Shown here piece by piece: positions 2,054 to 58,200 of a DNA stretch of 64,000 nt. The notes beneath the pieces are model-generated. The model saw only the letters and a list, made by a program, of their open reading frames with translations, searched no databases and was not told the DNA's origin. This stretch comes from Eutreptiella sp. 'Long Island Sound 2002'. Taxonomy: Eukaryota; Protista; Euglenida. Numbering within the stretch: the first letter of the stretch is position 1; each line of letters opens with the position of its first letter. Location: NCBI GenBank assembly GCA_964036045.1, contig OZ038378.1:146878001-146942000 (forward strand). Reading direction: 5' to 3'. Both the position numbers and the translations under genes were made by a program.

Positions 2054-3017
2054 CGGGAGAGGGGGTGGCATTGCTGAACGGTGACAATGACCCCCCCCCC
2101 CCTGCCCCCACATACACACAGCAGCTCGAGCGGCTTAGTCACCCGCACCCACACCCTCTTGATGCCGTGCGGTATGCCGGCCCTGGCCCCAGGCGCACAA
2201 ATGCAGTGGGGTCTCGCTGTGATGGGGCGGTTCATGGCACACGCCACTTTGCATCGTCCTTCACTGCCGCTCCCCTCTGAAGTCGTGTGCCTTTCCAGTG
2301 GACGCCGTCCAGTCGCCCTCGGGGGGGGAGGGGGGTCGCACAGGGTACCTCTGCCGAAGGTCCCCCCTCCGCCTTCGACGAGGTCCCCTTGAGTATCCCC
2401 CCCCCCCCCCTCTCCACAACCGTTTGAGTCTCCGAATGTGGCCTCAAACCCCCGGTCCCTTTGGCGGGGGGGGGGGTCGCGCTGGGGAATGGTCCGGGCG
2501 GACAGCGTTGGGGGTGTTGGTGTTGGTGGGGGGTGGGTCTGGGGGGGTGGCCATCCCCCCGGTCCCACGCAACGGCCCCCGATGGTCCCGTGCGCACGGC
2601 CCGGCCCCCGCTCCCCTGCGGCGGTTGAGCGGGGGGACTTCGGGGGGGGGGGGGGGGGAAGTGCCGTGGGGGTGCAAAGTGTGACGGGAGTGGTCCCTCG
2701 GATGCCCAGCAGTCCGTGGGCCGCATGTGCGATGGGACCCCCCGGAATTTGGGGGCTGATGAGGGGGGGAGGGAGGAGGTGGTGGACAAAGAGGATGTCT
2801 ATGGGGCTGGGGATTCTGGCCTGTTTTGGCTTCTTCTTTGGGGTGCCGACAACCGTAGGAGGACGCCCCCCCCCCCCCCTCCACGTGGACCCCTGGATCA
2901 TCTGTGGTTCATGGTCCCAAAACCGGATCATCTGTGGTCCATGGTCCCAAAACGCTGCACAAAATGTAACAAAATGTTTCTCTGGCCCTTTTGGCGCTAA
3001 TGTAGGGTGGTACTATG

Positions 3018-3877
3018 CATTGTCATAGTCATTGTCATAGTCATTGTCATAGTCATTGTCATAGTCATTGTCATAGTCATTGTCATAGTCATTGTCATAG
3101 TCATTGTCATAGTCATTGTCATAGTCATTGTCATAGTCATTGTCATAGTCATTGTCATAGTCATTGTCATAGTCATTGTCATAGTCATTGTCATAGTCAT
3201 TGTCATAGTCATTGTCATAGTCATTGTCATAGTCATTGTCATAGTCATTGTCATAGTCATTGTCATAGTCATTGTCATAGTCATTGTCATAGTCATTGTC
3301 ATAGTCATTGTCATAGTCATTGTCATAGTCATTGTCATAGTCATTGTCATAGTCATTGTCATAGTCATTGTCATAGTCATTGTCATAGTCATTGTCATAG
3401 TCATTGTCATAGTCATTGTCATAGTCATTGTCATAGTCATTGTCATAGTCATTGTCATAGTCATTGTCATAGTCATTGTCATAGTCATTGTCATAGTCAC
3501 TGTCATAGTCATTGTCATAGTCATTGTCATAGTCATTGTCATAGTCATTGTCATAGTCATTGTCATAGTCATTGTCATAGTCATTGTCATAGTCATTGTC
3601 ATAGTCACTGTCATAGTCATTGTCATAGTCATTGTCATAGTCATTGTCATAGTCATTGTCATAGTCATTGTCATAGTCATTGTCATAGTCATTGTCATAG
3701 TCATTGTCATAGTCATTGTCATAGTCATTGTCATAGTCATTGTCATAGTCATTGTCATAGTCATTGTCATAGTCATTGTCATAGTCATTGTCATAGTCAT
3801 TGTCATAGTCATTGTCATAGTCATTGTCATAGTCATTGTCATAGTCATTGTCATAGTCATTGTCATAGTCATTGTCA
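3018..3877. repeat. (CATTGTCATAGT)n 12-bp minisatellite, ~71 copies
   Basis: Near-perfect array; two CACTGT variants at 3498 and 3606. Confidence 0.98.
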
Positions 3878-4457
3878 CGTTGTCCATCTGTATGGGTCTC
3901 ATCCTGGAATGGACTGCAATCATCCGGAAGCCCCGAAAGTGAACAGCAATCATTCAGAGATGCGCCCCCCCGCAACCACGTGCGTCACCCCAGCACCCCC
4001 TCCCCCCTTTGGCGCCTCCCCCCCCCCCTTCCCAACGCGGTGCTCAGCAATGGCCCAGGAGGAGGGCCTCGGGCTGGGGTGTGTGTGTGGGTGGGGGGGG
4101 GGGGGGGGCGCTATACTCGGGTAAATGTGTCTGGGCACAGTGTCTACAAACTATACACCGGGTCTACGGACTATGCGTAAACGCGTATACGTATACACAC
4201 ATACGCGTATACGTGTATACGAAGTGTATACGTACATATCTGGAGCGCCCCATGCCTTAGGCCTGAGCGCGGCGCAGCGGCAGGGCCACGGGCCGGGGGC
4301 CCACCAAACCGAACCACCCCCCCCCCCCTCCGCATGCCACGGAGTGTTGGAAGGGGTCCTCCGCTGCCCCGGAGGGTGTGCGAGTGGAAGGGCCGCACGG
4401 CCCTCCACCGCGGCCCGTTGCCCGCCCACGCCCCCCGTGCCCCCCCCCTGTGCTCAG

Positions 4458-16600: not shown

Positions 16601-19600
16601 GACTAGCACACCACACGACGGGGGGGGGGGGGGCTGGTATGACGTGTGCTTGACTGTTGACTAGCACACCACACGACGGGGGGGGGGGGGCTGGTATGAC
16701 GTGTGCTTGACTGTTGACTAGCACACCACACGACGGGGGGGGGGGGGCTGGTATGACGTGTGCTTGACTGTTGACTAGCACACCACACGACGGGGGGGGG
16801 GGGGGGGCTGGTATGACGTGTGCTTGACTGTTGACTAGCACACCACACGACGGGGGGGGGGGGGCTGGTATGACGTGTGCTTGACTGTTGACTAGCACAC
16901 CACACGACGGGGGGGGGGGGGCTGGTATGACGTGTGCTTGACTGTTGACTAGCACACCACACGACGGGGGGGGGGGGGGCTGGTATGACGTGTGCTTGAC
17001 TGTTGACTAGCACACCACACGACGGGGGGGGGGGGGGCTGGTATGACGTGTGCTTGACTGTTGACTAGCACACCACACGACGGGGGGGGGGGGGGGCTGG
17101 TATGACGTGTGCTTGACTGTTGACTAGCACACCACACGACGGGGGGGGGGGGGGGGGCTGGTATGACGTGTGCTTGACTGTTGACTAGCACACCACACGA
17201 CGGGGGGGGGGGGGGGGCTGGTATGACGTGTGCTTGACTGTTGACTAGCACACCACACGAGGGGGGGGGGGGGGGGGCTGGTATGACGTGTGCTTGACTG
17301 TTGACTAGCACACCACACGACGGGGGGGGGGGGGGCTGGTATGACGTGTGCTTGACTGTTGACTAGCACACCACACGACGGGGGGGGGGGGGGGCTGGTA
17401 TGACGTGTGCTTGACTGTTGACTAGCACACCACACGACGGGGGGGGGGGGGGGGCTGGTATGACGTGTGCTTGACTGTTGACTAGCACACCACACGACGG
17501 GGGGGGGGGGGCTGGTATGACGTGTGCTTGACTGTTGACTAGCACACCACACGACGGGGGGGGGGGGGGCTGGTATGACGTGTGCTTGACTGTTGACTAG
17601 CACACCACACGACGGGGGGGGGGGGCTGGTATGACGTGTGCTTGACTGTTGACTAGCACACCACACGACGGGGGGGGGGGGCTGGTATGACGTGTGCTTG
17701 ACTGTTGACTAGCACACCACACGACGGGGGGGGGGGGGGCTGGTATGACGTGTGCTTGACTGTTGACTAGCACACCACACGACGGGGGGGGGGGGCTGGT
17801 ATGACGCCCGCCGTACGCCCCCAGTCCCGACCCGGAACACCATTCCGCCTGCCGTGCACCTGCAGAGGAACAGGCCCCCCGCCCTCCGAATCAAGAGGAG
17901 TGCCCTGCCTGCCAGCCCCCGGTCTGGTCAGGGGGGGGTAGGGGCTGTGTAGCCGTCCCGCTGCCTCTTGTATCGTGGGGACCTGCGGTAGCGTGGGGTG
18001 TGCCCGAATGCTGCTGCCCCCGTGCGGCCTCCCCGGGGGGGTCTGAGGGGTGATGGGCGTGGGGCCAGGCAGCCGCACGGGGGGGGGGGGGGGCAGGCAG
18101 CCGCACTGCGGGTGCGGTGCCGGTCATCGAGGGCCTGGAGCGCTGCTCTGAGTCAGAGAGGCACAGGCCCTCGCGCATGTGCAGTGCTGCGGGCGTGACA
18201 GCGTGGGCAACCCGGCGGGACGGCGATGGGGGGGGGGGGGAGGGGGGGCGGCACCCCACAGCCCATCCCACTGGGCCAACAGTCACGGCGGATGCCTCGG
18301 CCTTGTGACCCAACCCGGCGTGTTCCTGCCGCGGGCTGCCCCCCCCCCGAATGTCGTGGCGGTTCCCCCTCGGAGGAGGGGGGGCTGCATCACACAACAG
18401 TAGCACTAAACCTGCAGCATCAACTAAAGAAAAGGTTTTCGTCGGCGCCTGGCATCTCCAATGCTTTTTGGGCCAACATAGCCAACATAGCCCCCCCCCC
18501 CCCCCGAGTGGGGGGAGATATTTCGGGGCGGGGGGGGGGGGGGGCTATGTTTCTGATGCAATGCAACATGAAGCACTGGTGTAGGGCTTTCTCTTGTGGC
18601 GGGACCCATGCAGCGATGCAGTCGGTTTCGGGTCCTGGTGTTGCGGGGGGAGGGGGGGGGGTGCCTGATGCCTATGGGGAAACAGAAACAAGGGGCCAAG
18701 ACCGCGGCGTGCGGAGCTGTGTTTGTGTTTTGTGTCCCAGTGCATGCAGCACCCTTACAGGGGGGAGGTGTAGACCTCCTGTGGCAGTCAGCCCCTCCCC
18801 CCCCCACCACCACTAAGGCCAACCACCAAGGCCTTGTGCCAAACCCCCCCAAACGGTTCTGTAGCCCCCCCTCCCCTGTGCCGCCCTACCCCACCCTTCC
18901 GTAGGACCCCCTTTGCACCCTCCCCTCATTCCTGTCCCCCCTCAACATGTCCCCCGTTGGTATCACAAACGCCGTCCCTGTCCCAGATCGCTGAACAAGA
19001 GAGGCAGGCGATGGAGCGCCAGGAGATGCGGGACCGCGAGTTCATCCGGGAGGCGGCCCTCGCGCAGGAGCGGAGTGAGCGGATGGCCCAGCGGCAGGAA
19101 GAGCTGGAGAGGCTGGCGCAGAAGCAGGCAGAAGCGCGCAAGGCCAGCCCCAAAAGGAAGAAGAATGGGGAATGGGGGACCAAGATGGAGTACAATAGCA
19201 GACGCGCCATTGGCAACGTGAGCGCAGGAGTGAGGTGTGTTTGAGTGTGTGTGTGTGTGTGTGTGTGTGCGCGGTTTATGCAAGAGCCCACCACCTGCTG
19301 TGCGCCCACGGTGCGGTTTATGCAAGAGCCCACCACCTGCTGTGCGCCCACGGTGCGGTTTATGCAAGAGCCCACCACCTGCTGTGCGCCCACGGTGCGG
19401 TTTATGCAAGAGCCCACCACCTGCTGTGCGCCCAGGGTGCGGTTTACGCAAGAGCCCACCACCTGCTGTGCGCCCAGGGTGCGGTTTATGCAAGAGCCCA
19501 CCACCTGCTGTGCGCCCACGGTGCGGTTTATGCAAGAGCCCACCACCTGCTGTGCGCCCAGGGTGCGGTTTACGCAAGAGCCCACCACCTGCTGTGCGCC

Positions 19601-22600
19601 CACGGTGCGGTTTATGCAAGAGCCCACCACCTGCTGTGCGCCCACGGTGCGGTTTATGCAAGAGCCCACCACCTGCTGTGCGCCCACGGTGCGGTTTATG
19701 CAAGAGCCCACCACCTGCTGTGCGCCCACGGTGCGGTTTATGCAAGAGCCCACCACCTGCTGTGCGCCCACGGTGCGGTTTATGCAAGAGCCCACCACCT
19801 GCTGTGCGCCCACGGTGCGGTTTATGCAAGAGCCCACCACCTGCTGTGCGCCCACCGTGCGGTTTACGCAAGAGCCCACCACCTGCTGTGCGCCCAGGGT
19901 GCGGTTTATGCAAGAGCCCACCACCTGCTGTGCGCCCAGGGTGCGGTTTACGCAAGAGCCCACCACCTGCTGTGCGCCCACGGTGCGGTTTATGCAAGAG
20001 CCCACCACCTGCTGTGCGCCCAGGGTGCGGTTTACGCAAGAGCCCACCACCTGCTGTGCGCCCAGGGTGCGGTTTATGCAAGAGCCCACCACCTGCTGTG
20101 CGCCCAGGGTGCGGTTTATGCAAGAGCCCACCACCTGCTGTGCGCCCACGGTGCGGTTTATGCAAGAGCCCACCACCTGCTGTGCGCCCAGGGTGCGGTT
20201 TACGCAAGAGCCCACCACCTGCTGTGCGCCCAGGGTGCGGTTTACGCAAGAGCCCACCACCTGCTGTGCGCCCACGGTGCGGTTTACGCAAGAGCCCACC
20301 ACCTGCTGTGCGCCCACGGTGCGGTTTACGCAAGAGCCCACCACCTGCTGTGCGCCCAGGGTGCGGTTTATGCAAGAGCCCACCACCTGCTGTGCGCCCA
20401 CGGTGCGGTTTATGCAAGAGCCCACCACCTGCTGTGCGCCCACGGTGCGGTTTATGCAAGAGCCCACCACCTGCTGTGCGCCCACGGTGCGGTTTATGCA
20501 AGAGCCCACCACCTGCTGTGCGCCCAGGGTGCGGTTTATGCAAGAGCCCACCACCTGCTGTGCGCCCAGGGTGCGGTTTATGCAAGAGCCCACCACCTGC
20601 TGTGCGCCCACGGTGCGGTTTACGCAAGAGCCCACCACCTGCTGTGCGCCCACGGTGCGGTTTATGCAAGAGCCCACCACCTGCTGTGCGCCCCGGGTGC
20701 GGTTTACGCAAGAGCCCACCACCTGCTGTGCGCCCAGGGTGCGGTTTACGCAAGAGCCCACCACCTGCTGTGCGCCCAGGGTGCGGTTTATGCAAGAGCC
20801 CACCACCTGCTGTGCGCCCACGGTGCGGTTTACGCAAGAGCCCACCACCTGCTGTGCGCCCACGGTGCGGTTTACGCAAGAGCCCACCACCTGCTGTGCG
20901 CCCAGGGTGCGGTTTACGCAAGAGCCCACCACCTGCTGTGCGCCCAGGGTGCGGTTTATGCAAGAGCCCACCACCTGCTGTGCGCCCAGGGTGCGGTTTA
21001 TGCAAGAGCCCACCACCTGCTGTGCGCCCAGGGTGCGGTTTATGCAAGAGCCCACCACCTGCTGTGCGCCCACGGTGCGGTTTATGCAAGAGCCCACCAC
21101 CTGCTGTGCGCCCACGGTGCGGTTTATGCAAGAGCCCACCACCTGCTGTGCGCCCACGGTGCGGTTTATGCAAGAGCCCACCACCTGCTGTGCGCCCACG
21201 GTGCGGTTTATGCAAGAGCCCACCACCTGCTGTGCGCCCACGGTGCGGTTTATGCAAGAGCCCACCACCTGCTGTGCGCCCACGGTGCGGTTTATGCAAG
21301 AGCCCACCACCTGCTGTACGCCCACGGTGCGGTTTATGCAAGAGCCCACCACCTGCTGTGCGCCCAGGGTGCGGTTTACGCAAGAGCCCACCACCTGCTG
21401 TGCGCCCAGGGTGCGGTTTACGCAAGAGCCCACCACCTGCTGTGCGCCCACGGTGCGGTTTACGCAAGAGCCCACCACCTGCTGTGCGCCCACGGTGCGG
21501 TTTACGCAAGAGCCCACCACCTGCTGTGCGCCCACGGTGCGGTTTATGCAAGAGCCCACCACCTGCTGTGCGCCCACGGTGCGGTTTATGCAAGAGCCCA
21601 CCACCTGCTGTGCGCCCACGGTGCGGTTTATGCAAGAGCCCACCACCTGCTGTGCGCCCACGGTGCGGTTTATGCAAGAGCCCACCACCTGCTGTGCGCC
21701 CAAGGTGCGGTTTATGCAAGAGCCCACCACCTGCTGTGCGCCCAGGGTGCGGTTTATGCAAGAGCCCACCACCTGCTGTGCGCCCACGGTGCGGTTTACG
21801 CAAGAGCCCACCACCTGCTGTGCGCCCACGGTGCGGTTTATGCAAGAGCCCACCACCTGCTGTGCGCCCCGGGTGCGGTTTACGCAAGAGCCCACCACCT
21901 GCTGTGCGCCCAGGGTGCGGTTTACGCAAGAGCCCACCACCTGCTGTGCGCCCACGGTGCGGTTTATGCAAGAGCCCACCACCTGCTGTGCGCCCACGGT
22001 GCGGTTTACGCAAGAGCCCACCACCTGCTGTGCGCCCACGGTGCGGTTTACGCAAGAGCCCACCACCTGCTGTGCGCCCAGGGTGCGGTTTACGCAAGAG
22101 CCCACCACCTGCTGTGCGCCCAGGGTGCGGTTTATGCAAGAGCCCACCACCTGCTGTGCGCCCAGGGTGCGGTTTATGCAAGAGCCCACCACCTGCTGTG
22201 CGCCCAGGGTGCGGTTTATGCAAGAGCCCACCACCTGCTGTGCGCCCAGGGTGCGGTTTATGCAAGAGCCCACCACCTGCTGTGCGCCCACGGTGCGGTT
22301 TATGCAAGAGCCCACCACCTGCTGTGCGCCCACGGTGCGGTTTATGCAAGAGCCCACCACCTGCTGTGCGCCCACGGTGCGGTTTATGCAAGAGCCCACC
22401 ACCTGCTGTGCGCCCACGGTGCGGTTTATGCAAGAGCCCACCACCTGCTGTGCGCCCACGGTGCGGTTTATGCAAGAGCCCACCACCTGCTGTACGCCCA
22501 CGGTGCGGTTTATGCAAGAGCTCACCACCTGCCGTGCGCCCAGGGTGCGGTTTACGCAAGAGCCCACCACCTGCTGTGCGCCCACGGTGCGGTTTACGCA

Positions 22601-25600
22601 AGAGCCCACCACCTGCTGTGCGCCCACGGTGCGGTTTATGCAAGAGCCCACCACCTGCTGTGCGCCCACGGTGCGGTTTATGCAAGAGCCCACCACCTGC
22701 TGTGCGCCCAGGGTGCGGTTTATGCAAGAGCCCACCACCTGCTGTGCGCCCACGGTGCGGTTTACGCAAGAGCCCACCACCTGCTGTGCGCCCAGGGTGC
22801 GGTTTATGCAAGAGCCCACCACCTGCTGTGCGCCCACGGTGCGGTTTATGCAAGAGCCCACCACCTGCTGTGCGCCCAGGGTGCGGTTTACGCAAGAGCC
22901 CACCACCTGCTGTGCGCCCACGGTGCGGTTTATGCAAGAGCCCACCACCTGCTGTGCGCCCACGGTGCGGTTTATGCAAGAGCCCACCACCTGCTGTGCG
23001 CCCACGGTGCGGTTTATGCAAGAGCCCACCACCTGCTGTGCGCCCACGGTGCGGTTTATGCAAGAGCCCACCACCTGCTGTGCGCCCACGGTGCGGTTTA
23101 TGCAAGAGCCCACCACCTGCTGTGCGCCCAGGGTGCGGTTTATGCAAGAGCCCACCACCTGCTGTGCGCCCACCGTGCGGTTTATGCAAGAGCCCACCAC
23201 CTGCTGTGCGCCCACGGTGCGGTTTATGCAAGAGCCCACCACCTGCTGTGCGCCCACGGTGCGGTCGTAAACCGGTTAGTCCACTGGCTCACCCGTCACG
23301 CTCAGTGAGAGGGGACACGCTACACTAACCACGTCATCCCCGGCGTCTTCCAACCCGAGGGTTACCAACCGGCCTCGTGCGCCGTGGGTGAGCGAGTGGG
23401 CTTCGCCATGGGGACCAAGTGTGCGGCCCCATGGCCCCATATGTCTCTTTGTGCAATCGAAAAGAACACATCAAATGTTGAATAACCACTTCCTTAGTCG
23501 CTATTTGGATGACGGGTTGGTGTTGCACCCCTGGGGTGAAGGTGAAGCGCTGAAGACCCATCTCCGTGGGGTTTATCCGGCAGCTTTGCCATTTGAATTT
23601 GAAAGGTTTGAGGGGACATCAAATGTGGTGTTTTTGGATATATGTTCTGTGAGCATTGTACCGTTGAGGCGCCGCGTCCAATTGGAAAGCGACGCGTTGT
23701 TGTTCGTATGTCCCCCGGGAGCCAATGTGCCCAGGCATATTCGCATTGCATGGGTCCGGGCCGAATTCATCCGGTACATACGAATTCATGCGGTACATAC
23801 GAATTCATCCGGTACATACGCATTTCCGCACACCAACACTTTTTATTTCGCGGCATCGCAGCGGCTCATTGAGGCGCTACATTGGCTGTCCTCCCCCAAA
23901 CATGTGATTGAAAGTCTGTGGATACCGTGGGGTTGTAGGAGGAAGCACACACGACTTCAGAGGGGCTTGCCTCTAGGGGAAGAGGAGGTGCAATGCTCTC
24001 TTTCTCAAGTGGAAAATACGGATGCGAGGGATGGTGGGGGGGGATCGCCTCGAAGAGAGGTTGTTAGATCAAGTGCAGGCGCGTGCGTTGTATACCCCCC
24101 CTTTGGGGGGTCATTCGCGTAGCATACCCCAAGGCATGATATTGGATGTCCAACCCCTTGTAAAATCATTATTTTGCCCAATAAAACGATCTGGGCTGTG
24201 TGTCTGTACGCGTGCTGTGTGCTTATATGTCTGTTTTCTGGGGGCTGCCCAGCCCGTTTATTTGGCCACCTTGTTTTGTGAGCTGCCCCCAGCACCCCTT
24301 GCCTTCCCGCCGGCTCACGGAGCGGTTGCGGCAACCTGCCTCCGTGGAGAGGGCAATGGGCTGTTGCTCTCCTGCAGGGGGCTGCGGGCAGGTGGCTATA
24401 TAGCGTCTAGGTACCACACTGTAGGCGGCAGCAGGGAGCTGAGGTCCTGCGGTTCACTGCCACCTCCAGTAATCTCGAGCGGTGCATCGCCACACTGCAG
24501 AGAGCAGTGTGCAGCTGAACTCCTATGCCACCGTCACAGGGCCCCGACTGGCTTCCCCACCTCCAAGCCCTCCAACGTAACGACCCCCCCAACCCCATCC
24601 CCATCTACACCCCGGACAAAAACACCGTACCACTGCCACTGGCACAAAGGCACCCACATGTATGCCATCCCGGGCGTACACACACCCAGTGACCACCCTC
24701 AGCATACCAGGAAGGCTAGCAGTGTGAAAAAACTCTATTGCCTTCGGCAGTGCACCTCGAAGAGAGGCTGACAGTCAGCCAATCAGTCAGGCAGGCAAGA
24801 AGGCAGTCAGGCAGTTAGTCGGGCAAGCAGGCAGGCAGACAGGCAGATAGAGACACACAGTTTGGGGTTTGTGGCGGACTTGGCTACAAGCAGTGGGGAG
24901 CCCAACGTGTAACTGAAACTGGATATCACATTTTGGGGGGGGGTCAAAAATTTGTGCTCAGAAGGATTTGAACCATGGTCAGGTACAACAAAGCTTACAA
25001 GTCGGCCAGCTCAGCCGGCGGTCGGCCGGCCGGAAATCGAACCACCGACCTGATTGTTGGCAGTCGGGGGCATCCCCATTCGACCGCTGGGGGTTAGAGG
25101 CCTCAGAATCAAAAAATCCAATGGGGGACACGTTTTGCACTTCCTCATGTGCAAAACCCCGGCCATTGCCATCTGGTAAGAGCACCTTGGGCACACGCAC
25201 GCGCACACCCACACCCACACCCACACGCACACGCACACCAGAGTGCATAGGATGGGGTGCATCACATGTCCGTCTCTTCCTTGCCCTTTCCAGTCTGCCC
25301 CCCCCCCCCTTCCCATGCCTGGGGGGCCTGCCTCACCATTACTCAGACCCCCCTCCCGTCTCTACTCCTGTCCGTGCCGCAGGGAGCTGCACAAGGCGCA
25401 GGACGAGCGGCATTGGATGAAGACCTTGGCGCCCAAGACCAACGACCCGTACAGTTACAAGGCCTATCAAGACTGGGAGGGCCGCTTTTTGTTGGAGCGG
25501 GAGGCCAAAGTGGAGGTTTGCCCCACTGCCAGAGAGAATGGGTGCGTCCCTGGAGTGCCGTCCGTCCCCGTCTTTATGTGTTTATTTCTTTCAACACCCA

Positions 25601-40639: not shown

Positions 40640-41900
40640 TGCAAGGTGCCCATACCACCATGGCTGTGTGATTTGGTCGTCTTCTCATCTCACTGGGCCG
40701 TGGGTTGGTACTGACGAGAATACTGGTCGCTCAGATTTCCATTTGGACATCCGGCGCAAGGCCTGTACCGTGCACATGGAATCCGGGGATTTCGCAGTCG
40801 GGGGTGTGTTGAGGCATGGAGGGGGTGTAGCAGACTGGTCACAGTGTGTTTCGGGTGCCACATGAGGTATGCATTCCAATTTTGGGGGGCAGATGTGCAT
40901 TGCATTTGGAAACTTTGCCCGCAGAACCCCCTTTTGTGAATTTGGTGTACCATTGGTGACAGAAGGGGGGCTGCCATACCGGAAGGGCAAGTACATCGGT
41001 TCGCTGCGTCAATTTCGTGATGATATCTTGTTAGGGACAGACGCACCTGCCCATGAACAGGCAGTCTTACAGGGGGCGTGGGACCTCAACGTCGTCACGA
41101 CTGCGTGACCAAACACGACTGCTGCTGGTGTGGTTGCCAAGGTGGTGGGCGTGGTGCTCATTGGGCAACCCCATGGACAGGGCACTGGTTTTGTTCAGCC
41201 CTTGGCTTTGACTGCCAACTGGCAATCGCACTCAGTGAAGATGTAGCCAGACACATCCCTGTCACTCTACCCATGGAAAGGCGCTCGGCCGCCAATGGTC
41301 ATTTTCTTTGACTGGCTGGTTGCCCTGACGAGAACAGAGCCCTCAGCACCTTTTCTACCACCGGGTTGGCATGTATTACGTGTGTGTGCGTGTGCGTCAG
41401 GCCTGTTGCTCTAAATCTAGTGGCACTTGACAGCGTGGCTGCAGCAGTAGGGGTCAGGGAGAAGTCAGGATTCTCAGTACTGCATTGCATCTGCGCTGAC
41501 CAGTGCCACACATTGCGCTGTTCCCAACCAACCGAAAGACGTCCAGGGCTGCCCGGCAGCTCCTGAGGAGTTTTCTTTCACCGCTTTCTTGCGTTGTTCT
41601 CGTTTGCGGTTCCCATCGTGTGTGTTAGGGTCGAGCCCCCGGTCTAGTTGTGTATTGCCGGTTGCTGACTGAGTCCCCCATATCTGGAGCATTTGTATTG
41701 GAGTGTGGGTGTTTCTCTTTCACACTTTCCGCTTTGGTTGTGACAAAGTGTGTGTCTGTGCCTATCATTCAGATCGTTGCGTGGGGATGGGGCAAATGGT
41801 TCACCGTTGGCAAGCAGGAGCCCATTGCAGAGGCATGTCAAGGCCTGAGTTTCCGAGTGTCTATTTTGTGTTTTCGGGCATGCAGGTCCGCCACATGTAT
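40640..41900 (+). mobile_element. Degenerate reverse-transcriptase relic (PLE-like)
   Basis: RQFRDDILLG at ~41007 in broken frames; ~110 bp (41520-41625) also occurs inverted at 29385-29480. Confidence 0.45.
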
Positions 41901-41919
41901 TGCCCGGCGAGCCTCTGCA

Positions 41920-43488
41920 ATGAAGCACCGTGGACCGCTCGCCGCCCTCATTGTCCTGTGCCTGCCCTTGACCTTCTTCGTGGGCCTGCGCTACGAGGGG
42001 CAGCAGGTCCAAGCAGATGACCTCCTCCCCTACCGGGCGCCCCCGCACGCCTCCGCAGCCGCCACAGGCCCACCGACCGCATCGCCGGCGGCTGCCGCGC
42101 CGGGCGGTGCGGCCATGCGCCGCACGGAGCCGGCGACGGCCCCACCGTCACGGGGCACTGTCCACTCCATGCCCTTGACCTCCCCCATCGCCCCCCGGGA
42201 GCATCCCCCACACGCGACGTCCGGGTCGCCGCGGCCCCACGACGCCCCTGCCGCTCCCAACGGCACTCACGCCGATTCGGAGCCGCGCGCGCGGCCCGAG
42301 ACGGAGCCGCACGCGCGGCCCTCCGCACCGCAGGCGGCGCCGGGACCGCCGGGGTCTAAGGCCCCAAGGGCGGTGACGCTGCTGATGACGCACATGCAGG
42401 CGTTCAGCAACCGGTGGCTGCACCCCAGGGAGTTCCCGTGCCCCCTGGTGAAGTGCGTCGTGCACAAGGCCAACAAGACGGACTTCCAGGCGCAGCTGCG
42501 GCGGGCGGACATCCTGCAGTACGACTCGACCCTCCTGCGGTCCGGCGGGGCGTTCGAGTACGACCTGAGGGGCAACCCGCAGCGGCTGTTCCTGATGATG
42601 GTCAACGTCGAGAACCTCCGCCGGCACCTGGAGTTCTACCGGACCCTCAACTGGTGGGTGGGCTGGCTCTGGAAGGATCCCACGCTGTGGGAGCACTTCC
42701 ACATTGTCTCCTCCACGGAGCCCGGGTCCATCGCCCCGTACAACTACTGGGTGGACTGGATGGAGGCGGAGGCGGTGCGCCCGTACGTCGCGCAGTACCA
42801 GAAGCGCGCGCGCAGGTTGAAGCACGCGGCGCCCCTGGTGCTGTTCATGTCCTCGCACCAGGGCCGGCCGTTCACGCTGTTCAACGCCACGACCGACCGG
42901 GCCAAGCTCGCGAAGGCCATGCTCAAGGCGGTCAGCATGATGGTCGTGGGGCAGGTGCGGCAGCTCATGGGCATGGCGCCCAACGCCAAGAAGGACTTCG
43001 GCGACTGCCCCCAGATCCGGCACCTCCCGTACTCCACTCTGTGCATGCTCAGCCAGTACCTGTTCTTCTTCGTGGTCGAGAACTCGGTGGACTGGGGCTA
43101 CGTGTCCGAGAAGGTGTACTACAGCCTCGCGGTGGGCACGGTCCCGGTGTACCTCGGGGCCCCGGACATCGACAACTACGTGCCGCCCCGGTCCATCATC
43201 AAGGTGACCGACTTCCCCTCGTTGCAGGCCCTGGGCGGCTACCTCAAGTGCCTCGTGAACATGCGGCCGGACCTCTACGACTACTATCTGAACTGGAAGT
43301 CCCGCACGAACGAGGCGTGGGCGGCGTGGTCCTCCATGGCCAGCCACCCCTTCTGCAGGGCGTGCAGTCTGGTGGCGCGCAACGACAGCGTCCTGTACGA
43401 CCGGAAGGCACGGGTGCCGCGCGTGCTCAAGCACGTCTTCCCCAGCGCCGAGGGCTCTCAGAGGCCGTTCCCGGAGTGCATGCCGTAG
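41920..43488 (+). CDS. Glycosyltransferase family 10 (alpha-1,3/4-fucosyltransferase-like), type II membrane protein, 522 aa, intronless
   Basis: N-terminal MKHRGPLAALIVLCLPLTFFVGL signal-anchor, Pro/Ala stem, and the GT10 motif YLFFFVVENSVDWGYVSEKVYYSLAVGTVPVYLGAP..IKVTDFPSLQALGGYL; very high GC3. ATG 41920 is preferred over the track's 41650 start. Confidence 0.9.
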   Translation: MKHRGPLAALIVLCLPLTFFVGLRYEGQQVQADDLLPYRAPPHASAAATGPPTASPAAAAPGGAAMRRTEPATAPPSRGTVHSMPLTSPIAPREHPPHATSGSPRPHDAPAAPNGTHADSEPRARPETEPHARPSAPQAAPGPPGSKAPRAVTLLMTHMQAFSNRWLHPREFPCPLVKCVVHKANKTDFQAQLRRADILQYDSTLLRSGGAFEYDLRGNPQRLFLMMVNVENLRRHLEFYRTLNWWVGWLWKDPTLWEHFHIVSSTEPGSIAPYNYWVDWMEAEAVRPYVAQYQKRARRLKHAAPLVLFMSSHQGRPFTLFNATTDRAKLAKAMLKAVSMMVVGQVRQLMGMAPNAKKDFGDCPQIRHLPYSTLCMLSQYLFFFVVENSVDWGYVSEKVYYSLAVGTVPVYLGAPDIDNYVPPRSIIKVTDFPSLQALGGYLKCLVNMRPDLYDYYLNWKSRTNEAWAAWSSMASHPFCRACSLVARNDSVLYDRKARVPRVLKHVFPSAEGSQRPFPECMP

Positions 43489-49650: not shown

Positions 49651-50200
49651 TGGTAATATAATATATGCGGTTTTGCCTACCGCATCAGAGAGCCCTCTGG
49701 TATACGCATGTGAACTCTGGATCTTTGCCATGTGCCCCGCGTTGCGGGGATCCACTGTATCATATGCTGGAGACGCCCACTTTCCCAAGCACGGTCTTGA
49801 GTACTCTTTGAACTTCTGGAGTCAGCCAAAAAAAAAAACTTGGGGCGATTTCAAGCGGGTCCAGGTGTACTCGACGCAAAAGTGGCACAGCAGCGCCAGC
49901 ATCCTCCCCTAACCACTGGACACATGTTTGCATGTCGGCAACCACCAGAACCTTCGTCTAGGCCTTTTGCACATGCTCCGGGGTGTATAGAAAGGTTGTT
50001 GCGGGTTTCAGCGCATGCAGTTGACATGCAGCGCAGGGCCCACAGTGCACACTCTTCATACCATGCCGGACAAGACCCCTTCCCTGTGGTATCAGGGGGG
50101 TGAGTGGCGCAAGTGGGGTATTTTCAAGCGGCAAACGCCTGGAAAGCACAGCTATTGTTGATCGCTGCAGGATGTGATGGATAAACAGAGGTGTTAGGTG

Positions 50201-52780
50201 CAGGGGGGGGGGGGTTCTGAGAAATCCGATAGCGTGGGGGGTTTTGAAAACCCCCCCCTTTTTTACAAATGGTCCGAAGGGGGGTTTTAAGGGTGTTTTT
50301 CGACGCACGCACATCATTTGTGCGATTTTTTTTCCGGTGTTGTTCTTTTAGACTGCACATCCAGAGTTTTGTCCTTGCCCCCAATTCAGCCACTTTTGAT
50401 TTTGTCCCCTTAGCTAGGGACCCCCCACAATGCAAGGGTGACGTTGCATTTCCGCCCTTTTTTTGGACATTTCTGATTTCTGATTGGCTCATCTGTGCAC
50501 AATGTCTTGGAATCTCTTTACCAAGGCGGTGCAACCCTTTTGAAACCATGTGGTGCACCCCTTGTCTTGGACAAAGAAGATAAATTTTTGGGGACCGCCC
50601 CGGACACCAAAGGAATGGAGGATAGCGATCCTACCGATGCTTGTTCCCTGGAATCCTGGCTGCGTTGTCATGGTTCAGACCGAAATCGAGCCTATGTCCC
50701 ATGCGCCAACGGACACACCGTGCATATTACACAACTTGTCAATGAGTATTTCAACGGCAACGTTGAACATGTGTCAACCGATCGGCTACGGCGCACGGCA
50801 CAAACCGCCCGGTTTGGTCAAACCCCCACGAATGTAAACAATGTTGCATTGTCTGACAATTGCAATTTTGATGAGGACGCGGTCACGGTGGGTGCTATCT
50901 TTCTTGCACTTGTGACCTTCATATGGGGCTCGCAACGGACGTGTTCCGTGGGCACATTTAGTTTTTCATGGTGCACCGTTGACGGTGCACGGGTTTATGG
51001 TACCACGAAGGAGGCGCTTGCGACGGGACATGCCATCCCCGTAACGGGTCAATTTTTGCCTTTTGTCGTTATGACCACTGATCCAACCTTGTTGCGGTGG
51101 ACGGGGCGGTTTGGTCCGGAATGTGAGTTTCGGAATGGGCATGTGGTTTTTTTGGATGCCCAAATGGACGCCGATGGTCGTTGGCTGATTCCAGTGGGCA
51201 CCCTGTCTGCCTTTGTGAAAACTGCAAAGGTACCCAATTGTCCTCAGTTGCGTGCAGAGCCATACGCTGGTGTGGCACATAGTAGCGTGCGGCCCGCAGA
51301 AGCAACGGAATTTTGTTTGTTTTGTGGAGTGGCCATTGCTTTGGCAAGGATGCGTCATCATGTGGCAGTGCACTTGCAGAAAGGAGAGGTGGTAACGGAC
51401 CCAAGGATGCATGGTGAGGCCGAACCTTGTGGTTTTTGTGGACGCACAACAGGCACGTGTACCACAAGTATTGTGGGCAAGAAAATCAGTAGCACATGCC
51501 CGTGTGTGGTCCCATTGCAGCTCGCAATGGCCATGCGCAAACAAGAAAACATGCCCCGTGAATGTCCTATTCCCGGGTGCAGTGCCACCCCGTGGGTTTT
51601 GAACATCAAAACTCACTTGGCTCGGTGCCATCCAACCGTGCCACCCAACACCGTTGATTTGACGGAATGGGTTGTAGTCGGGCAGACAAAAAAAGAGAAA
51701 AAAAAGGGGCGAGCCAAAAAAATCCCCATGGTGATGAAGCCCAAGATGACTTTGAAAGTGGCAAAGGCGGTGGACAACGAGAGTGCGTCCTTCTCTGAAG
51801 CCTCTCTTGGACGCTCCGATTGGGACTGGAAACCGGAGGAGGATGCAAGCTCTGTGGAATCTAGGTCTTCCGCAGATAACGATTCGTCTAGCGGTAACGA
51901 GAGTTCCGCAACTTCCGAGGATGGCAATTGGTCCTCTTCTTCCTCATCTTCTTCCTCTTCCACCTCTTCTTCCAGGGTGGAAGTTGTCCCGCAAAAGAAA
52001 GCCGTTCCTGGCAAGGGCACAACGCGGCCCATCACCGCTACCAAGCAAAATGCGAAGAAGCGTTGCACGGTGAAGACGTCAGGGCGGAAGAAGTAGGCGG
52101 AGCTACATGCACACACACACACACACACGTCACAAACGGATACCTCCCCCACCCCCTACACCTCCTCGCTCTCCCTCTCCTTCCCTTGTAGTTGCATGCA
52201 CACTAGGACTGGAAGGCCCACACAATGGCGCGGGGAGGGAGGCCTGGCCAGCCATAGCCTTAAGGGCCTCCCGAGTTGCGTCGGCCGACCAGTATAGTCA
52301 CACACACACACCCCTTCTTTTAGGCCCTCCCCTTGACGCATTTCCCACCCCATGGTGTATTTCTAACCCCATGATGCATTCCGAACCCCATGACGGACCT
52401 TGATGCGGGTCAACCCCCATGCTGCAATTCTAACTCCATGGTGTACTTCGAACCCCATGACCGCCTCGGAGACCCACAGTCCCGAGGTTTCTGGTACCCA
52501 CGGCCGGAAATACCCAAGCCGATGAAGCCCTACCATAGACGTTGGTAGGGGCGGTGCGAATTGTCGGATCACACCTGGGCCGCATACCCAACTTTTCGGA
52601 GGTGCCCGACACTATGTTCTTCATTGGGGGGGGGTTTGGGGGGCTGGGGGGCCGTTTCCGCGGACAATACCCCCGCGCAGCGAAAAACCCCCTTAAACCC
52701 CCCCCCCCAAAACCCCCCCCCTTTTACATTTGGCTCTGGGGGGGGGTTTAAGCATGATATCCGAGAATCCCCCCCCCCTG
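50201..52780 (+). mobile_element. 2,580-bp TIR DNA transposon (hAT/P-like ends), probably non-autonomous
   Basis: Perfect 8-bp TSD GTTAGGTG at 50193-50200 and 52781-52788. Left end CAG11TTCTGAGAAATC written as CA+G12+TTCTG; right end reverse-complement CA+G10+ATTCTCGGATATC. Imperfect inverted subterminal blocks of ~100 bp. Confidence 0.9.
50495..52096 (+). CDS. Transposon-borne ORF (533 aa open frame; first ATG 50615) with several Cys/His clusters, acidic Ser-rich and basic C-terminal tracts
   Basis: Uninterrupted frame inside the TSD-bounded element; motifs CLFC..RHHVAVH, PCGFCG, CPC, CPIPGC..HLARCH; codon usage unlike the GC3-rich host genes. Confidence 0.7.
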   Translation: MHNVLESLYQGGATLLKPCGAPLVLDKEDKFLGTAPDTKGMEDSDPTDACSLESWLRCHGSDRNRAYVPCANGHTVHITQLVNEYFNGNVEHVSTDRLRRTAQTARFGQTPTNVNNVALSDNCNFDEDAVTVGAIFLALVTFIWGSQRTCSVGTFSFSWCTVDGARVYGTTKEALATGHAIPVTGQFLPFVVMTTDPTLLRWTGRFGPECEFRNGHVVFLDAQMDADGRWLIPVGTLSAFVKTAKVPNCPQLRAEPYAGVAHSSVRPAEATEFCLFCGVAIALARMRHHVAVHLQKGEVVTDPRMHGEAEPCGFCGRTTGTCTTSIVGKKISSTCPCVVPLQLAMAMRKQENMPRECPIPGCSATPWVLNIKTHLARCHPTVPPNTVDLTEWVVVGQTKKEKKKGRAKKIPMVMKPKMTLKVAKAVDNESASFSEASLGRSDWDWKPEEDASSVESRSSADNDSSSGNESSATSEDGNWSSSSSSSSSSTSSSRVEVVPQKKAVPGKGTTRPITATKQNAKKRCTVKTSGRKK

Positions 52781-52913
52781 GTTAGGTGTATGGGCCGTGC
52801 ACATAGAAGTTTTGGGTGCCTGGAGGACGTTTGGATATTTCAGGTTTGTGATGGGCCTGATCCCGCGTGTGCATGCCTCCCTTTTGTGAGCGGCCCTTCT
52901 TTTTGGGCTTAGA

Positions 52914-54641
52914 ATGAAGCGACGCTTGTCCGATGAAAATGACCGTAAATCAAGACAAAAGCAGCGGCATTTTGTGGACGTAGACGCCGAGACCCCAATC
53001 GATGCGGATGCGGATGCGGTCGGCGATGAACAAGTTGACGCTGATTCGGATGCCGATCTGCAACGGGCCATTGCCCTGAGCTTGGCGGAGTTCGAGGCAA
53101 ATGCCGGGACCCCGGCCACGGCGGCCAGCCCCAAGGCCTGTGACGTGCAGGGGCCCGACCCGAATGACTGCACACCCTCACTCTCCGCCCCTCCGCAGGC
53201 GGCCACCTCCTCCGCCTCCGCCACACCTCCCGCCCCTCCCCCGCCGCAGCCCACCCCCACCCCCCCTCAGAGCGCGCGCGGCGGCCCCAACTCGTGGCTC
53301 GGGGCGCTGCACGCCGAGCGTCTGGCGCGCAGGGGAGGGGCCCCGGCGCCGGCCCCGCGCGGCGCGTCGCCGCCCCCGAAGGCCGCGCGCACCTTCTCCG
53401 GCGACACGTTCTACCTGAACCGCCTGGCGTGCGCCGGCGCGGCGCGGTGCCCGCACACCGTGACCTTCGAGGAGCTGGTCGACAAGGCCCACCTGCAGTC
53501 CGGCATCTTCACGACCTTCTGCTTCGACCCTGAGTTCCTGCTGCCGCGGGTGCGCCGGGCCACGCCCGTCACCATCGTGAAGCACTGGGCCCCGCCGGAG
53601 GAGAGAGCCGGGCACTTCCTGGTGCGCGAGAACGTGACCTGCCTGCACCCGCGGCTGGACCGCTTCCAGAGCATGCACGCCAAGCTCTACGTCCTGCTGT
53701 TCCCGGCCTTCGTCCGCGTCGTCGTCACCAGCGCCAACCTGACGCAGGGCGACTACGAGGGCGTCCTGCAGAACTTCTGGGCGCAGGACTTCCCTCGCAA
53801 GGCGGCGCGGGCGACCCCCGCGGGGGGGGGCCGCGGCCTCGGCGCCGGCTTCCGGCGGGAGCTGTACGCCTTTTTGGAGCAGCTGCCGCTCAACCCGAAG
53901 TTTCTGGACGCGTACGATCTGGAGGCCGCCCGCGTGGAGCTGGTGGCCTCAGTGCCCGGGAGGTACGCGCGCGACGACCGCGGCCGGTACGGGTGCCTGC
54001 GGATCGCGGGTCTGCTGCGGAAGTACAGCGTGACCGCCGCGCCGGGCGCCGCCAGCGACGGCCTCTGTGCCGGGCTCCGCGCGCAGCCCCTGTGGCACCA
54101 CGTCAGTTCGCTGGGCAGCCTCACCCAAAAGTGGTTGGACTGGTACGCGGCCGCCCTGCGCGACGGCCCCGGCGCCGCGGGCGTCGCGATCGTGTTCCCG
54201 TCGGACGCCACCGCCCGGGCCACCGGCGACGCCCGGAACGGCTGCGGGGTGATCTGCTGCAGCCGCAAGGCCTACGAGGCGGCCGCCTTCCCCCGGGGGG
54301 CGCTGCACCACTTCATCAACGCGGGCCCCGCCGCGCGGACCACGCACCTGTCGCACTGCAAAGTCCTCCTGCAGGCGACCCCCACGCCCGAGGGACCCGG
54401 CAGCCACTTCGGGTGGGCTGTGGTGGGGTCGCACAACCTCTCGGCCGGGGCCCTGGGGCGGCCCGAGAAGGACGGGGCGCAGGTGCACATCGGGAACTGG
54501 GAGCTGAGCGTGTTCTTCCCCCCGGCCGCCCTCACGCTCTGTCAGGACGGGGCGGGCCCCACGGCGATGCCCGTCCCGTTCCGGTGCCCGCCCCCCGCGT
54601 ACCGCGCGGGCGACACGCCTTTCTTGGACTTCGGCAAGTAG
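52914..54641 (+). CDS. TDP1: Tyrosyl-DNA phosphodiesterase 1 (PLD superfamily) with N-terminal ubiquitin-interacting motif, 575 aa, intronless
   Basis: Two HxK...N catalytic motifs: MHAKLYVLL..RVVVTSANL and SHCKVLL..WAVVGSHNLS..ALG; also ELVASVPG, SSLGSL, NWELSV and a terminal P.PF..PP..Y...D.PF; UIM-like DADLQRAIALSLAE. Confidence 0.92.
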   Translation: MKRRLSDENDRKSRQKQRHFVDVDAETPIDADADAVGDEQVDADSDADLQRAIALSLAEFEANAGTPATAASPKACDVQGPDPNDCTPSLSAPPQAATSSASATPPAPPPPQPTPTPPQSARGGPNSWLGALHAERLARRGGAPAPAPRGASPPPKAARTFSGDTFYLNRLACAGAARCPHTVTFEELVDKAHLQSGIFTTFCFDPEFLLPRVRRATPVTIVKHWAPPEERAGHFLVRENVTCLHPRLDRFQSMHAKLYVLLFPAFVRVVVTSANLTQGDYEGVLQNFWAQDFPRKAARATPAGGGRGLGAGFRRELYAFLEQLPLNPKFLDAYDLEAARVELVASVPGRYARDDRGRYGCLRIAGLLRKYSVTAAPGAASDGLCAGLRAQPLWHHVSSLGSLTQKWLDWYAAALRDGPGAAGVAIVFPSDATARATGDARNGCGVICCSRKAYEAAAFPRGALHHFINAGPAARTTHLSHCKVLLQATPTPEGPGSHFGWAVVGSHNLSAGALGRPEKDGAQVHIGNWELSVFFPPAALTLCQDGAGPTAMPVPFRCPPPAYRAGDTPFLDFGK

Positions 54642-54739
54642 CACCGTGGCCCAGGCGTGTGGCGGAGGCGGGGGGGGCGGGGGCTGCCGCGAGGCTGGGC
54701 AGCACAACCACAAATGGACACTCGATGAACCGCGAGCGA

Positions 54740-55278
54740 CCCAAACACTGCACAGCCAACGCCAACCCAAACACTGCACAGCCAACGCCAACCCAAACAC
54801 TGCACAGCCAACGCCAACCCAAACACTGCACAGCCAACGCCAACCCAAACACTGCACAGCCAACGCCAACCCAAACACTGCACAGCCAGCGCCAACCCAA
54901 ACACTGCACAGCCAACGCCAACCCAAACACTGCACAGCCAACGCCAACCCAAACACTGCACAGCCAACGCCAACCCAAACACTGCACAGCCAGCGCCAAC
55001 CCAAACACTGCACAGCCAACGCCAACCCAAACACTGCACAGCCAACGCCAACCCAAACACTGCACAGCCAACGCCAACCCAAACACTGCACAGCCAGCGC
55101 CAACCCAAACACTGCACAGCCAACGCCAACCCAAACACTGCACAGCCAACGCCAACCCAAACACTGCACAGCCAACGCCAACCCAAACACTGCACAGCCA
55201 ACGCCAACCCAAACACTGCACAGCCAACGCCAACCCAAACACTGCACAGCCAACGCCAACCCAAACACTGCACAGCCA
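54740..55278. repeat. 26-bp minisatellite, ~21 copies, downstream of TDP1
   Basis: Unit CCCAAACACTGCACAGCCAACGCCAA. Confidence 0.97.
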
Positions 55279-58200
55279 AAGCCATACTCCGGAGGCGCGC
55301 TTTCACAGAGCACAACCAACGGAGGTACCCACCCGCAAACCCGACCGATGGATCATCCCCCGAGCGCCCCCCCATATCCGAAGGCACGTGTCTGCACTCC
55401 TGCCAACCGCGTTGGTCACCCACGACGCCGGCACCCGCCGCTGCAGCCGTGGCCCATAGGCCGAGTGCCCCTGTGCAGACCCTTCGGAGCCCCGCCCAAC
55501 CCCCGCCCACCGCCGACGCTTGCGACGTTTTGTGCCCCTTTTTTGGGGCTTGGGGGGCATGTGGACGAGCAGTGGGTGTAGTGTACCCACAGGCCGCCCC
55601 CGCCCTCCGTAGGGGCTGGTGTGACGGTAGCCCCCCCCAAGGCCTGGGTGGCAGGGGCTACCGGTGGTTGGGGGGGGGGGGGGGGGTAATAGTCCCCGGG
55701 AAGCCTCCGGGGGGGGAGGGGGGCGGCAGCAGAGGGCCCCGGACGAGGGGGGGCGTCAAGGCGGCATTCGGGGCAGCTCGGGTTTGTGCTGCGGGAGTGG
55801 CACGGCAGAACGGAACAGTGGAGCGGCACTTGAACTGAGTGCGTGTGGCAGGAGGTCCGGATTGTGCGGGTCGGTTCAACGCCGGAGGCCCTGGCCCCCC
55901 CCTTTCCGAACCGACCAACGGAGCACCGACGGTGGCGGCCGCGCTGTGACGGTGTGTCATAGGCCGCCCAGGCCCTGACCCCCCCCTCTGACCCAAGGCA
56001 CAGGGGGCGTCCACGCACTCGCTCCGCGCAGCAGTGACCAGGGGCGCAATGGACCGGCACCACCGGTCGCCCCCGAACACCGGCCGGAACGATGACCGCC
56101 ATGGCCCATGAGTGGGGGCAGTCGGGGGCCAGTCAAGGCTGCCTCCGTCCCGGGGGCCCCAATGCCGCGCCGCAGGGACTGGCAGGGGCGGCGCGGCCTC
56201 CCACTCCGCGTGTCCCCCGGCGGTGCCCGGCCCTCCCTTCGTGCGGTGCCATGGCTTTGTGCCGGTCCCTACCCCTTGGGCCTGCAGCCCCAGGGCCGTG
56301 TTGCCCTCTTCTCCCGCTCCCAGGCCCTCCAGATGGTCCTCCCTCACACAGACCCGTTTGCCAAAAGGCGTCTCGGCCCTTGACAAGCGTTGCTTTCCTT
56401 CCTGCGCCCTTCGTATGCCGCTGCTGAGGACGGAGCAGCACAGCGGATTGTCCCGCTGCTCACAGCAGATCGGGTTCCGCAGGGGGGAGCACGCGCCCTG
56501 GTCACGGGGTTTCCACAAACACAAGCGGAAAAAGAGGTTGGCAATGGCTCCCGAGACACTGGTAATGGTACATTCGGGCAACAAGCGCAGGCATGCACGA
56601 CGGCATTCGAACACAACACCCTGAGGCCGCTGGGCCTTGCAAGTACACTCACTGCCGTGCCTTGCTGTGCGCTGCCATTCCCTCCACGCCACGCCACGCC
56701 CTGGCCCGCAGATGGGGATGCGAAGCCTTGGGCGTAGGCACGGGGGGGCTGTGCAGGACAATTAGGAGCGCCATAGCCTCGTCCGTCAGCAGGTGCCAGA
56801 CATGGGGGGCGCACCGCGCGCTGTGCGGAAACTCGGCCGTTTTCCACCGCCGGTAGCCATGGGTCCCAGGGTCCTGAACTCTGCACCCCCGATGCTGTGT
56901 TGAATGGATCATGCCCGCTTCTGTATGGGAGGTGGTTTGCAGGGGTGTTCCCGCGAGAAACACCGTCATACTTGGCGCTGTGCCCGCGCTGTGCACGCAC
57001 TCGCTCCCATACGCCACATGCCCACCCGGCGTGTACGGCGGTCGTGCATCGCAGATGTGCAGTCAGGAAGTAGGGGACACCATCTCAAGGAGGGCCGCCA
57101 GCATGGGTCCGTGGGGTTAGTACTCATACCCGATCAATGTAGTGGGGGGTAGGCCAACAGACGACAATTTTGAGCCTGGGGCATAGACTTGGCTGAACTG
57201 ACTGTCGGCCCAAACTCCAGCCTCCGCATCGTGTCCGCAAGGAGGCACACGGGGCCATGCCTCCAGCTGACCAGGGAACAGGTCAGAGCTCGGTAAACGG
57301 GAGGAAATGCAATCCATGACCCGATGGGTCACGAGGTGGCCGACAACCTGATCCTGGACCCGGGGATTATCACCCGAGAGATCAACGGGAAGTTGCAAAA
57401 ACAAAAAACGTTCTGTCGTTCAGAAACACGGTGGTGCCCCCGAGCAAGAGAGAAAGAGGACATCTGAGCAGAACAACCTTTTAATTGCCTCCAATCTCGC
57501 TCGCTTGTTTTACTGGTCGCATGCCTCGAAGGTGGGGCAGGCAGTACGATAGGCCCGCACCCCGAACGGAAATTGCTGCCCCCCCCCATGTGCCAATGAC
57601 TACAAAACTGTTGCACGGGTAAATATGCCTGTGCCCGAAGAATCGTCATCAGTCAGTGACACCTTGAGCGTAGGAACAAAACCAAAGAACCATGACAACC
57701 CACACACCAGCAATCCAGAGACAACACCCCCCCAGGGCAGTTGGCCAAGCGTCATGCCCGTCAACAACCCCCTGCCCCTGCCCCCCTACAGCCATGGAGC
57801 GCAGGGTCCGGAGGACGTGCTTGGCCAGCCCATATGCAGGGGTGTGCACCACCGAGGTGGTCTTGGAGCCCGAGGATCGGCCATCGAGTCCCAATGCAAA
57901 CCTCTCCCCTTTCCCCTGCCCCGCTGTGGGAAACAGATGCGGGCGCCTGGTCCTGCCCCGGTGCACAAGAAGGGAGGTCGCACAACGGGTGCAGCGAAAG
58001 AAGAGATCTTCGGCAACATGTCATCGGTGCCTTGCACTGCAGTCACCTTTCACACACACACACACACACACACCCTCTGTTTCAATGGCCGCAAGATGAT
58101 GTGCAGCAAATAGGTCATGTGGCGCGTCAGGCTGGTCATATTTCTAGGGAATGCCGGGCTAGTAATGGAGATGCCCCGGAGGGAGGGAGGGGGGCAGCCG

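Follow-up and report, generated by a model that had tools for sequence, protein, structure and literature searches.

The locus examined here raises the question of what a unit can be that has the ends of a DNA transposon and a single long open frame but no visible transposase core. The unit lies in a 64,000-nt stretch of contig C1 in the 2.28-Gb assembly of the euglenid Eutreptiella sp. 'Long Island Sound 2002' (this whole stretch, GC-rich and eukaryotic in its DNA, is called the window, and positions are window coordinates), where it occupies 50201–52780 (2,580 bp) between two direct copies of GTTAGGTG. An initial annotation, made from the letters alone, left two alternatives: an internally deleted member of an undescribed large-transposase family, or a non-autonomous element carrying a cargo gene. 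We show that the unit belongs to a cut-and-paste DNA transposon family that has a high copy number in this genome, and conclude that it is very probably an ordinary, non-autonomous internal-deletion derivative of a very divergent P-like lineage, since both termini and the target-site duplication (TSD) are in place, while the interior, though collinear with that of longer copies, has lost the catalytic core. The first alternative is borne out by these longer copies, which encode a predicted DDE/RNase H transposase.

A search of the host genome for the element returned 3,574 first-look candidates, and the 40 that were scored yielded 56 matches at 91–97% identity; own-genome searches score just a part of their candidates, so that the numbers of copies, and likewise the uniqueness reported below for the junction, are lower bounds. 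All ten copies for which both ends are known have a perfect 8-bp TSD, and the ten TSDs all differ (GTTAGGTG for the window copy; GCTATGGT, TGCATGAC, GGGGTGCC, CGCCCCCT, CCCAAACC, GAGGTCAC, GGCAGGGC, GGGCCACT and GTTGCGGC for the other nine). These ten range from 2.58 kb (the window copy, which is the shortest) to 8.28 kb, and complete family members measure approximately 6.6–9 kb. A complete member consists of an imperfect terminal inverted repeat (TIR) of about 30 bp starting with CAG, a 279-bp 5' block, an array of 85-bp tandem units, an intronless transposase gene and about 700 bp of 3' non-coding sequence that holds short subterminal repeats. The number of 85-bp units between the 5' block and the gene is strongly variable (loci L034, L032 and L035), with 29 units in the copy on contig C19 (L034:4851-7329), a few in those on C6, C20 and C5, and none in the window copy; the array may contain transposase-binding sites.

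Every other copy parts from the window copy at element position 279/282. The 5' block of the window copy corresponds to positions 1–279/280 of the other copies (93–96% identity), and past position 279 the longer copies continue into the 85-bp array and then into coding sequence, not directly into the open reading frame (ORF) seen in the window. The window junction reads ...TTTCTGATTT-CT-GATTGGCTC..., the parental sides being ...TTTCTGATTT/TGCCCC... at 5' (the slash marks the break) and ...CACAGATTGGCTC... at 3'. The deletion, at approximately 50479–50482, measures ~5.7 kb when the C19 copy is the reference and ~6.3 kb against a complete copy, and has taken away the array, the transposase N-terminus and all three catalytic residues (up to codon ~499). 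The filler nucleotides and the microhomology at the junction suggest that the deletion probably arose through interrupted gap repair or end joining after excision. Since no other locus among the 40 of 181 candidates scored spans this junction, there is no sign of the window derivative amplifying. At a further locus (L008:~1460-1530) a different internal deletion joins ...HPDW (CCTGATTGG) to the GATTGG site that was used in the window junction too, and GATTGG may be a recurrent microhomology breakpoint.

What remains of the gene is a single uninterrupted frame of 533 codons in the ORF listing (50495–52096), which opens 14 nt past the deletion junction and whose listed start is GTG (bacterial table). 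It corresponds to residues 499–1030 of the 1,030-codon open frame of locus L003 on contig C5, with 508 of 533 residues identical. A genome search with the first 500 residues found a 1,573-codon stop-free frame in two identical C5 copies. The C19 copy has separate ORFs of 387, 318 and 663 aa, its gene being disrupted by a ~600-bp deletion and, where the first ORF gives way to the second, by a stop or frameshift; because the C5 copies carry the 1,573-codon frame, we read these three ORFs as what appear to be pieces of a single gene. The candidate catalytic residues, numbered as in L003, are D83 (CVDEVA), D190 (GTDGD), D227-x2-H230 (DPPHLFKN) and E406 (PAENLF), and since all of them lie upstream of residue 499, the window copy is without any catalytic residue. 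The initial annotation had described an intact, stop-free gene; the frame is indeed uninterrupted, but the gene is not intact, consisting as it does of the last 533 codons of a longer transposase frame. The window copy carries the following features.

50193..50200, no strand: left TSD, GTTAGGTG, identical to 52781-52788
50201..50231, plus strand: 5' TIR, CAG12TTCTGAGAAATCCGATA, same terminus in nine other copies
50201..50479, plus strand: 5' terminal block of 279 bp, with G-run/TTT subterminal motifs and a G6T4-A4C8 palindrome, common to full-length copies
50480..50481, plus strand: internal-deletion junction, 2-nt filler beside CTGATT/GATT microhomology, found at no other locus among the 40 scored out of 181 candidates
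50482..52096, plus strand: transposase gene remnant, the C-terminal 533 codons, without D, D, D(2)H and E, 508/533 identical to L003
50879..51193, plus strand: predicted small beta-barrel domain (ORF residues 129-233), modelled with a predicted local distance difference test (pLDDT) score >90 by AlphaFold2 (AF2), kept in fungal homologues
51314..51634, plus strand: putative zinc-finger region (CxxC...HxxxH, CGxCG...C, CPxxxC...HxxxxH), Cys/His columns nearly invariant in A1 (the family profile described below) and A3
51686..52093, plus strand: low-complexity tail from the translation, comprising a basic patch, a Ser/Asp/Glu-rich stretch and a basic C-terminus, with a similar tail in relatives
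52097..52780, plus strand: non-coding 3' region, containing (CA)n runs and, at 52331-52480, about six subterminal repeats of the CCCCATG type, from the repeat search
52750..52780, minus strand: 3' TIR minus 7 bp (ATTTCCG), a heptamer present in 9/9 other complete copies
52781..52788, no strand: right TSD, GTTAGGTG, by direct sequence reading

The termini agree with this placement. The element starts with CA-G12-TTCTGAGAAATCCGATA and ends with TATCCGAGAAT-C10-TG, the longer terminal read at 3' being TATCCGAGAATC10TG, and a repeat search recovered terminal inverted arms at 50204-50226 and 52756-52778 (23 nt, 83%) as well as subterminal inverted blocks at 50279-50309 and 52674-52704 (31 nt, 84%). 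In complete copies (for example that on C19) the TIR is ~31 nt long and ~27 of 31 nt match between the 5' and 3' ends; the shortening of the 3' TIR in the window copy can be read directly from the letters, ATATCCGATTTCCGAGAATC... in other copies versus ATATCCGAGAATC... here. The internal CCCCATG-type repeats of the 3' region are present in every other copy. That the unit is a TIR element with a perfect 8-bp TSD, as first annotated, is therefore true, given GTTAGGTG on both sides, the CAG...CTG ends and the 8-bp TSDs of ten copies out of ten.

Whether the insertion is recent is less clear. The perfect TSD supports the recent insertion that was initially put forward, but the copy differs by ~3% from its nearest relatives, and the open frame says little on insertion age because this stretch is open in approximately half of the 29 other copies compared as well. 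Considering this, and that the ratio of non-synonymous to synonymous substitution rates (dN/dS) of the window ORF against other open copies is 0.47–0.91, we suggest that the open frame reflects the youth of the family and not selection on the window locus. The two identical C5 copies (L004, C5:35508372-35509871, and L003, C5:35533163-35534662) are separated by 24.8 kb inside a segmental duplication; they have the most complete coding sequence of the copies examined, although L003 is without 11 codons (KFTRHDMQDML) that are found in the C19 copy. Diverged transposase subfamilies with 32–38% amino-acid identity are also present (C14:33021681, C5:65791670, C3:113201379, C11:59906732, C1493:44566 and C12:46661112), several with open frames of 860–1,290 codons, and to judge from these sequences the transposase lineage appears to have diversified inside this genome.

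What kind of transposase the family encodes was approached through both sequence and predicted structure. Pfam returned nothing meaningful for the window ORF, the three ORFs of L034 (the C19 copy) or the 1,030-aa L003 frame; neither a phmmer search of the single protein against PDB sequences nor a word-indexed protein search gave a match. An exhaustive HMMER search of 1.84 billion proteins gave 1,047 matches at E <= 0.001. Many of these are fragments at 60–95% identity, whose source is presumably this euglenid or related ones; the long named matches (22–35% identity) are all hypothetical proteins of Agaricomycetes, from the genera Ceratobasidium, Pleurotus, Exidia, Plicaturopsis, Tephrocybe, Ephemerocybe, Mycena, Rhodofomes and Schizophyllum, and the ESM atlas contributed unnamed Basidiomycota clusters only. 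The 32 long relatives matched no Pfam family, except for one that matches PF21787 (TNP-like_RNaseH_N, a P/THAP9 model) at E 8.5e-4, under the curated cut-off. The catalytic D, D and E columns are invariant across the 32 fungal relatives, and the family spacing is 37 residues from the second D to D(2)H and 216 residues from D to E. When the family profile A1 (69 members) was run against PDB sequences, it matched the Drosophila P element transposase (6p5a, E 9e-5), with the family DE placed on D230 of P and DpKHllK on D339-x2-H342 of P (D339-T-P-H342).

The AF2 model, built with the family alignment (pLDDT 85.5; predicted template-modelling score, pTM, 0.82), points the same way. Foldseek gave strong matches to 6p5a and 6pe2 only (top match 6p5a, E 5e-11, TM 0.66), and VIA-align superposed model residues 1–443 on chain residues 148–567 of 6p5a (Z 17.4, 382 residues, 3.8 A), with the insertion domain of the model falling on its 6p5a counterpart, the domain that in P transposases binds the GTP cofactor; the other Z scores were 10.1 for Transib, ~9 (9.3) for RAG1 and 6.3 for Hermes (hAT). 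The transposase is thus predicted to combine a D(2)H motif with a DDE core of RNase H fold, in which an alpha-helical insertion domain separates the second D from E. Longer members with a DDE/RNase H fold, for which the initial annotation had advised looking, were accordingly found, in the form of a 1,573-codon frame with the predicted fold of the P element transposase (Z 17.4) and no Pfam family.

The two ends of the protein are less easily placed. The N-terminus is Cys-rich and unlike THAP, and the THAP model (PF05485) found no match in the N-terminal ORFs of L034 or in the 32 long relatives. Its ~390 aa (the 387-aa ORF at L034:2954-4114, minus strand) show HxxxxL...YWYLDSHG and several CxxC motifs but neither a Pfam family nor profile similarity to the fungal N-termini, with a weak atlas match to Herpes_teg_N-type cysteine protease clusters (0.75). 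At the other end, the fungal homologues have conserved the barrel and zinc-finger module that survives in the window copy. For the zinc-finger region, the profile matches a C2H2 finger protein (E 0.0014), with Pfam zf_C2HC_14 sub-threshold; the C-terminal part alone, compared with known structures, resembles barrels of the Tudor/KOW/PWWP/BAH type weakly (Z <= 5.2), and a Foldseek search with this part alone gave no match at E <= 0.001.

Several points weigh against our interpretation and should be read together. The Pfam models for the P element, THAP9 and THAP gave nothing significant on the euglenid protein and nothing at E <= 10 for the L003 frame, and PF21787 found no match in the host genome, where its controls gave none either, so that the link to P consists of one modest profile E-value together with a predicted structure. 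The length of the 1,573-codon frame was taken from the genome-search table, and excision, gap repair and mobilization in trans enter our account as steps that we infer. Finally, no precise empty site was found. Paralogues on contig C18 of the flanking sequences 49840-50000 and 52921-53180 (82–86% identity) have the two flanks 18 bp apart, and these sites without the element are also without ~340 bp of flank; window positions 50001–52920 may be an intron or a variable 5' region. The two sites, both in the duplicated TDP1 locus, are the following.

C18:38742379-38742816: paralogous site without the element
C18:38809853-38810290: paralogous site without the element

The cargo hypothesis, in which the unit is a non-autonomous element with a captured host gene between transposon ends, drew only on the first impression of an ORF without a transposase core (no Pfam match). 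The ORF proved to be collinear with residues 499–1030 of the L003 transposase frame (508/533, 95% identity), and the same module is conserved in fungal homologues, which refutes a cargo gene and leaves this part of the initial annotation scarcely credible. An identification of the element as hAT or KDZ (Zisupton/Dileera), not P-like, fares little better and we regard it as very improbable, even though the 8-bp TSDs and CAG termini fit hAT, the named relatives of the family are Agaricomycete proteins, and elements with 8-bp TSDs (Zisupton and Dileera) or CA..TG termini (Kyakuja) are all common in Agaricomycetes (PMC12730594). The hAT dimerization domain, DUF659 and KDZ_trans are absent, by Pfam, from the euglenid protein and its 32 long relatives; the profile matches the P transposase and no hAT chain; and Hermes reaches a Z of 6.3 as against 17.4 for P. 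hAT identity was ruled out on these Z scores and on the absence of hAT Pfam domains, and KDZ identity was rejected through Pfam alone (no KDZ_trans match). The initial reading of the 8-bp TSD and CAG ends as hAT or P is hence upheld on the side of P and not on that of hAT.

A further reading gives the truncated copy a regulatory role. Internally deleted P elements encode repressors (KP-type), and with these as precedent the window copy might, by analogy, express a C-terminal barrel/zinc-finger protein (first in-frame ATG at ORF codon 41, ~493 aa) that regulates the family as a poison subunit or as a titrator of DNA or partners. The frame is open, the 279-bp 5' block is kept directly upstream, and the module that is kept is a conserved part of the transposase and is predicted to fold. 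However, the junction is unique among the scored copies, indicating a variant neither amplified nor selected, the dN/dS of 0.47–0.91 against other copies is near neutral for the window copy, and half of the copies keep the frame open through youth alone, so that we consider KP-like regulation unlikely, if somewhat less so than either of the readings weighed above.

Returning to the internal-deletion derivative, we propose the following history. The insertion of a family member made the 8-bp target duplication, and internal loss from the 5' block to codon ~499 would have left both ends and the C-terminal third of the transposase frame, this remnant probably being still open only owing to the youth of the family. 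The window copy cannot move alone and could at best be moved in trans by full-frame copies, which to judge from their sequence may still be active in this genome; the shortened 3' TIR and the missing 85-bp array may block even mobilization in trans.

The element sits between two intronless genes. A GT10 fucosyltransferase gene (41650-43488) precedes it by ~6.7 kb, and the TDP1 gene (tyrosyl-DNA phosphodiesterase, with UIM; PF06087, E 8e-53; 52914-54641) starts 133 bp past it. Adjoining the left flank, a stretch of 38–41 nt at 49801-49841 has at least 35 exact genome matches and resembles the end of a different high-copy repeat. Elsewhere in the window, an array of ~4.3 kb with a 39-bp tandem unit (18926-23330) has all six frames open, with translations periodic at 13 aa, and two further repeats occur at ~3000-3950 and 54650-55400, one being a long 6-bp microsatellite with the translations (TM)n, (VI)n or (HCHS)n and the other an array of ~63-bp units directly downstream of TDP1.

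Taken by itself, the window copy would be a routine, dead deletion derivative whose ORF should be annotated as a transposase remnant and not as a host protein. The family is of wider use. Through it, more than 1,000 uncharacterized proteins, mostly mushroom hypotheticals without a Pfam domain, acquire an identity that can be tested, namely as P-like DDE transposases; it would extend the P-type fold to euglenids and Agaricomycetes; and activity could be tested with those of its copies in which the 1,573-codon frame is complete and both the ends and the TSD are defined.

The place of the family among known systems can be judged by comparison. With hAT elements (Ac, Hermes) it shares 8-bp TSDs, CAG-start termini and a predicted DDE core with an alpha-helical insertion domain, but it is without the BED finger and the hAT C-terminal dimerization domain, and Hermes superposes with a Z of 6.3 only; moreover, hAT elements prefer nTnnnnAn targets, which GTTAGGTG does not fit. 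Transib and RAG1 share the architecture of RNase H core and insertion domain and have the second-best fold scores (Z 9–10), but their TSDs are 5 bp, these Z scores are much lower than that of P, and they have no sequence-level match to the family. The KDZ group (Kyakuja, Dileera, Zisupton) likewise has large transposases with Cys-rich zinc modules, and is, as the family is, very abundant in mushrooms, with TSDs of 7–8 bp and, in some cases, CA..TG termini (PMC12730594); the KDZ_trans and CxC models of Pfam, however, match none of 33 proteins, and both sequence and fold point to P.

The P superfamily (Drosophila P element, 1360, Galileo, human THAP9) is the closest of these systems. Its members and the family described here are cut-and-paste TIR elements with 8-bp TSDs, the RNase H DDE core is split by a long insertion domain with D(2)H ~37 residues past the second D, and internally deleted non-autonomous copies are abundant in both; the D-to-E spacing of 228 residues in P and 227 in Galileo (PMC4168063) is close to the ~216 of the family. 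In contrast to P, the family protein reaches about double the length (at most 1,573 codons, compared with 751 aa), has a lineage-specific N-terminus of ~500 aa and an added module of beta-barrel and zinc fingers at the C-terminus, and is encoded in elements with an internal 85-bp tandem array, and neither a THAP domain nor a Pfam P-element/THAP9 model was detected in it at threshold. Because no THAP domain was detected and no curated P-family model reaches threshold, we file the family as a divergent, unnamed P-like lineage and not as P element proper, and no description of the lineage was found in the literature. The hosts, a euglenid and Agaricomycetes, differ as well: canonical P elements are not reported from them, and fungal P elements have been reported in Pucciniales and Allomyces only (PMC5751038). 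We put forward, tentatively, that the parent family may be an unnamed sister lineage of P at the level of a superfamily, with a giant (~1,500 aa), THAP-less transposase, a conserved C-terminal module and 8-bp TSDs, so far confined to the euglenid and Agaricomycetes; if this is true, its distribution would imply either a deep ancestry followed by massive loss, or inter-kingdom horizontal transfer.

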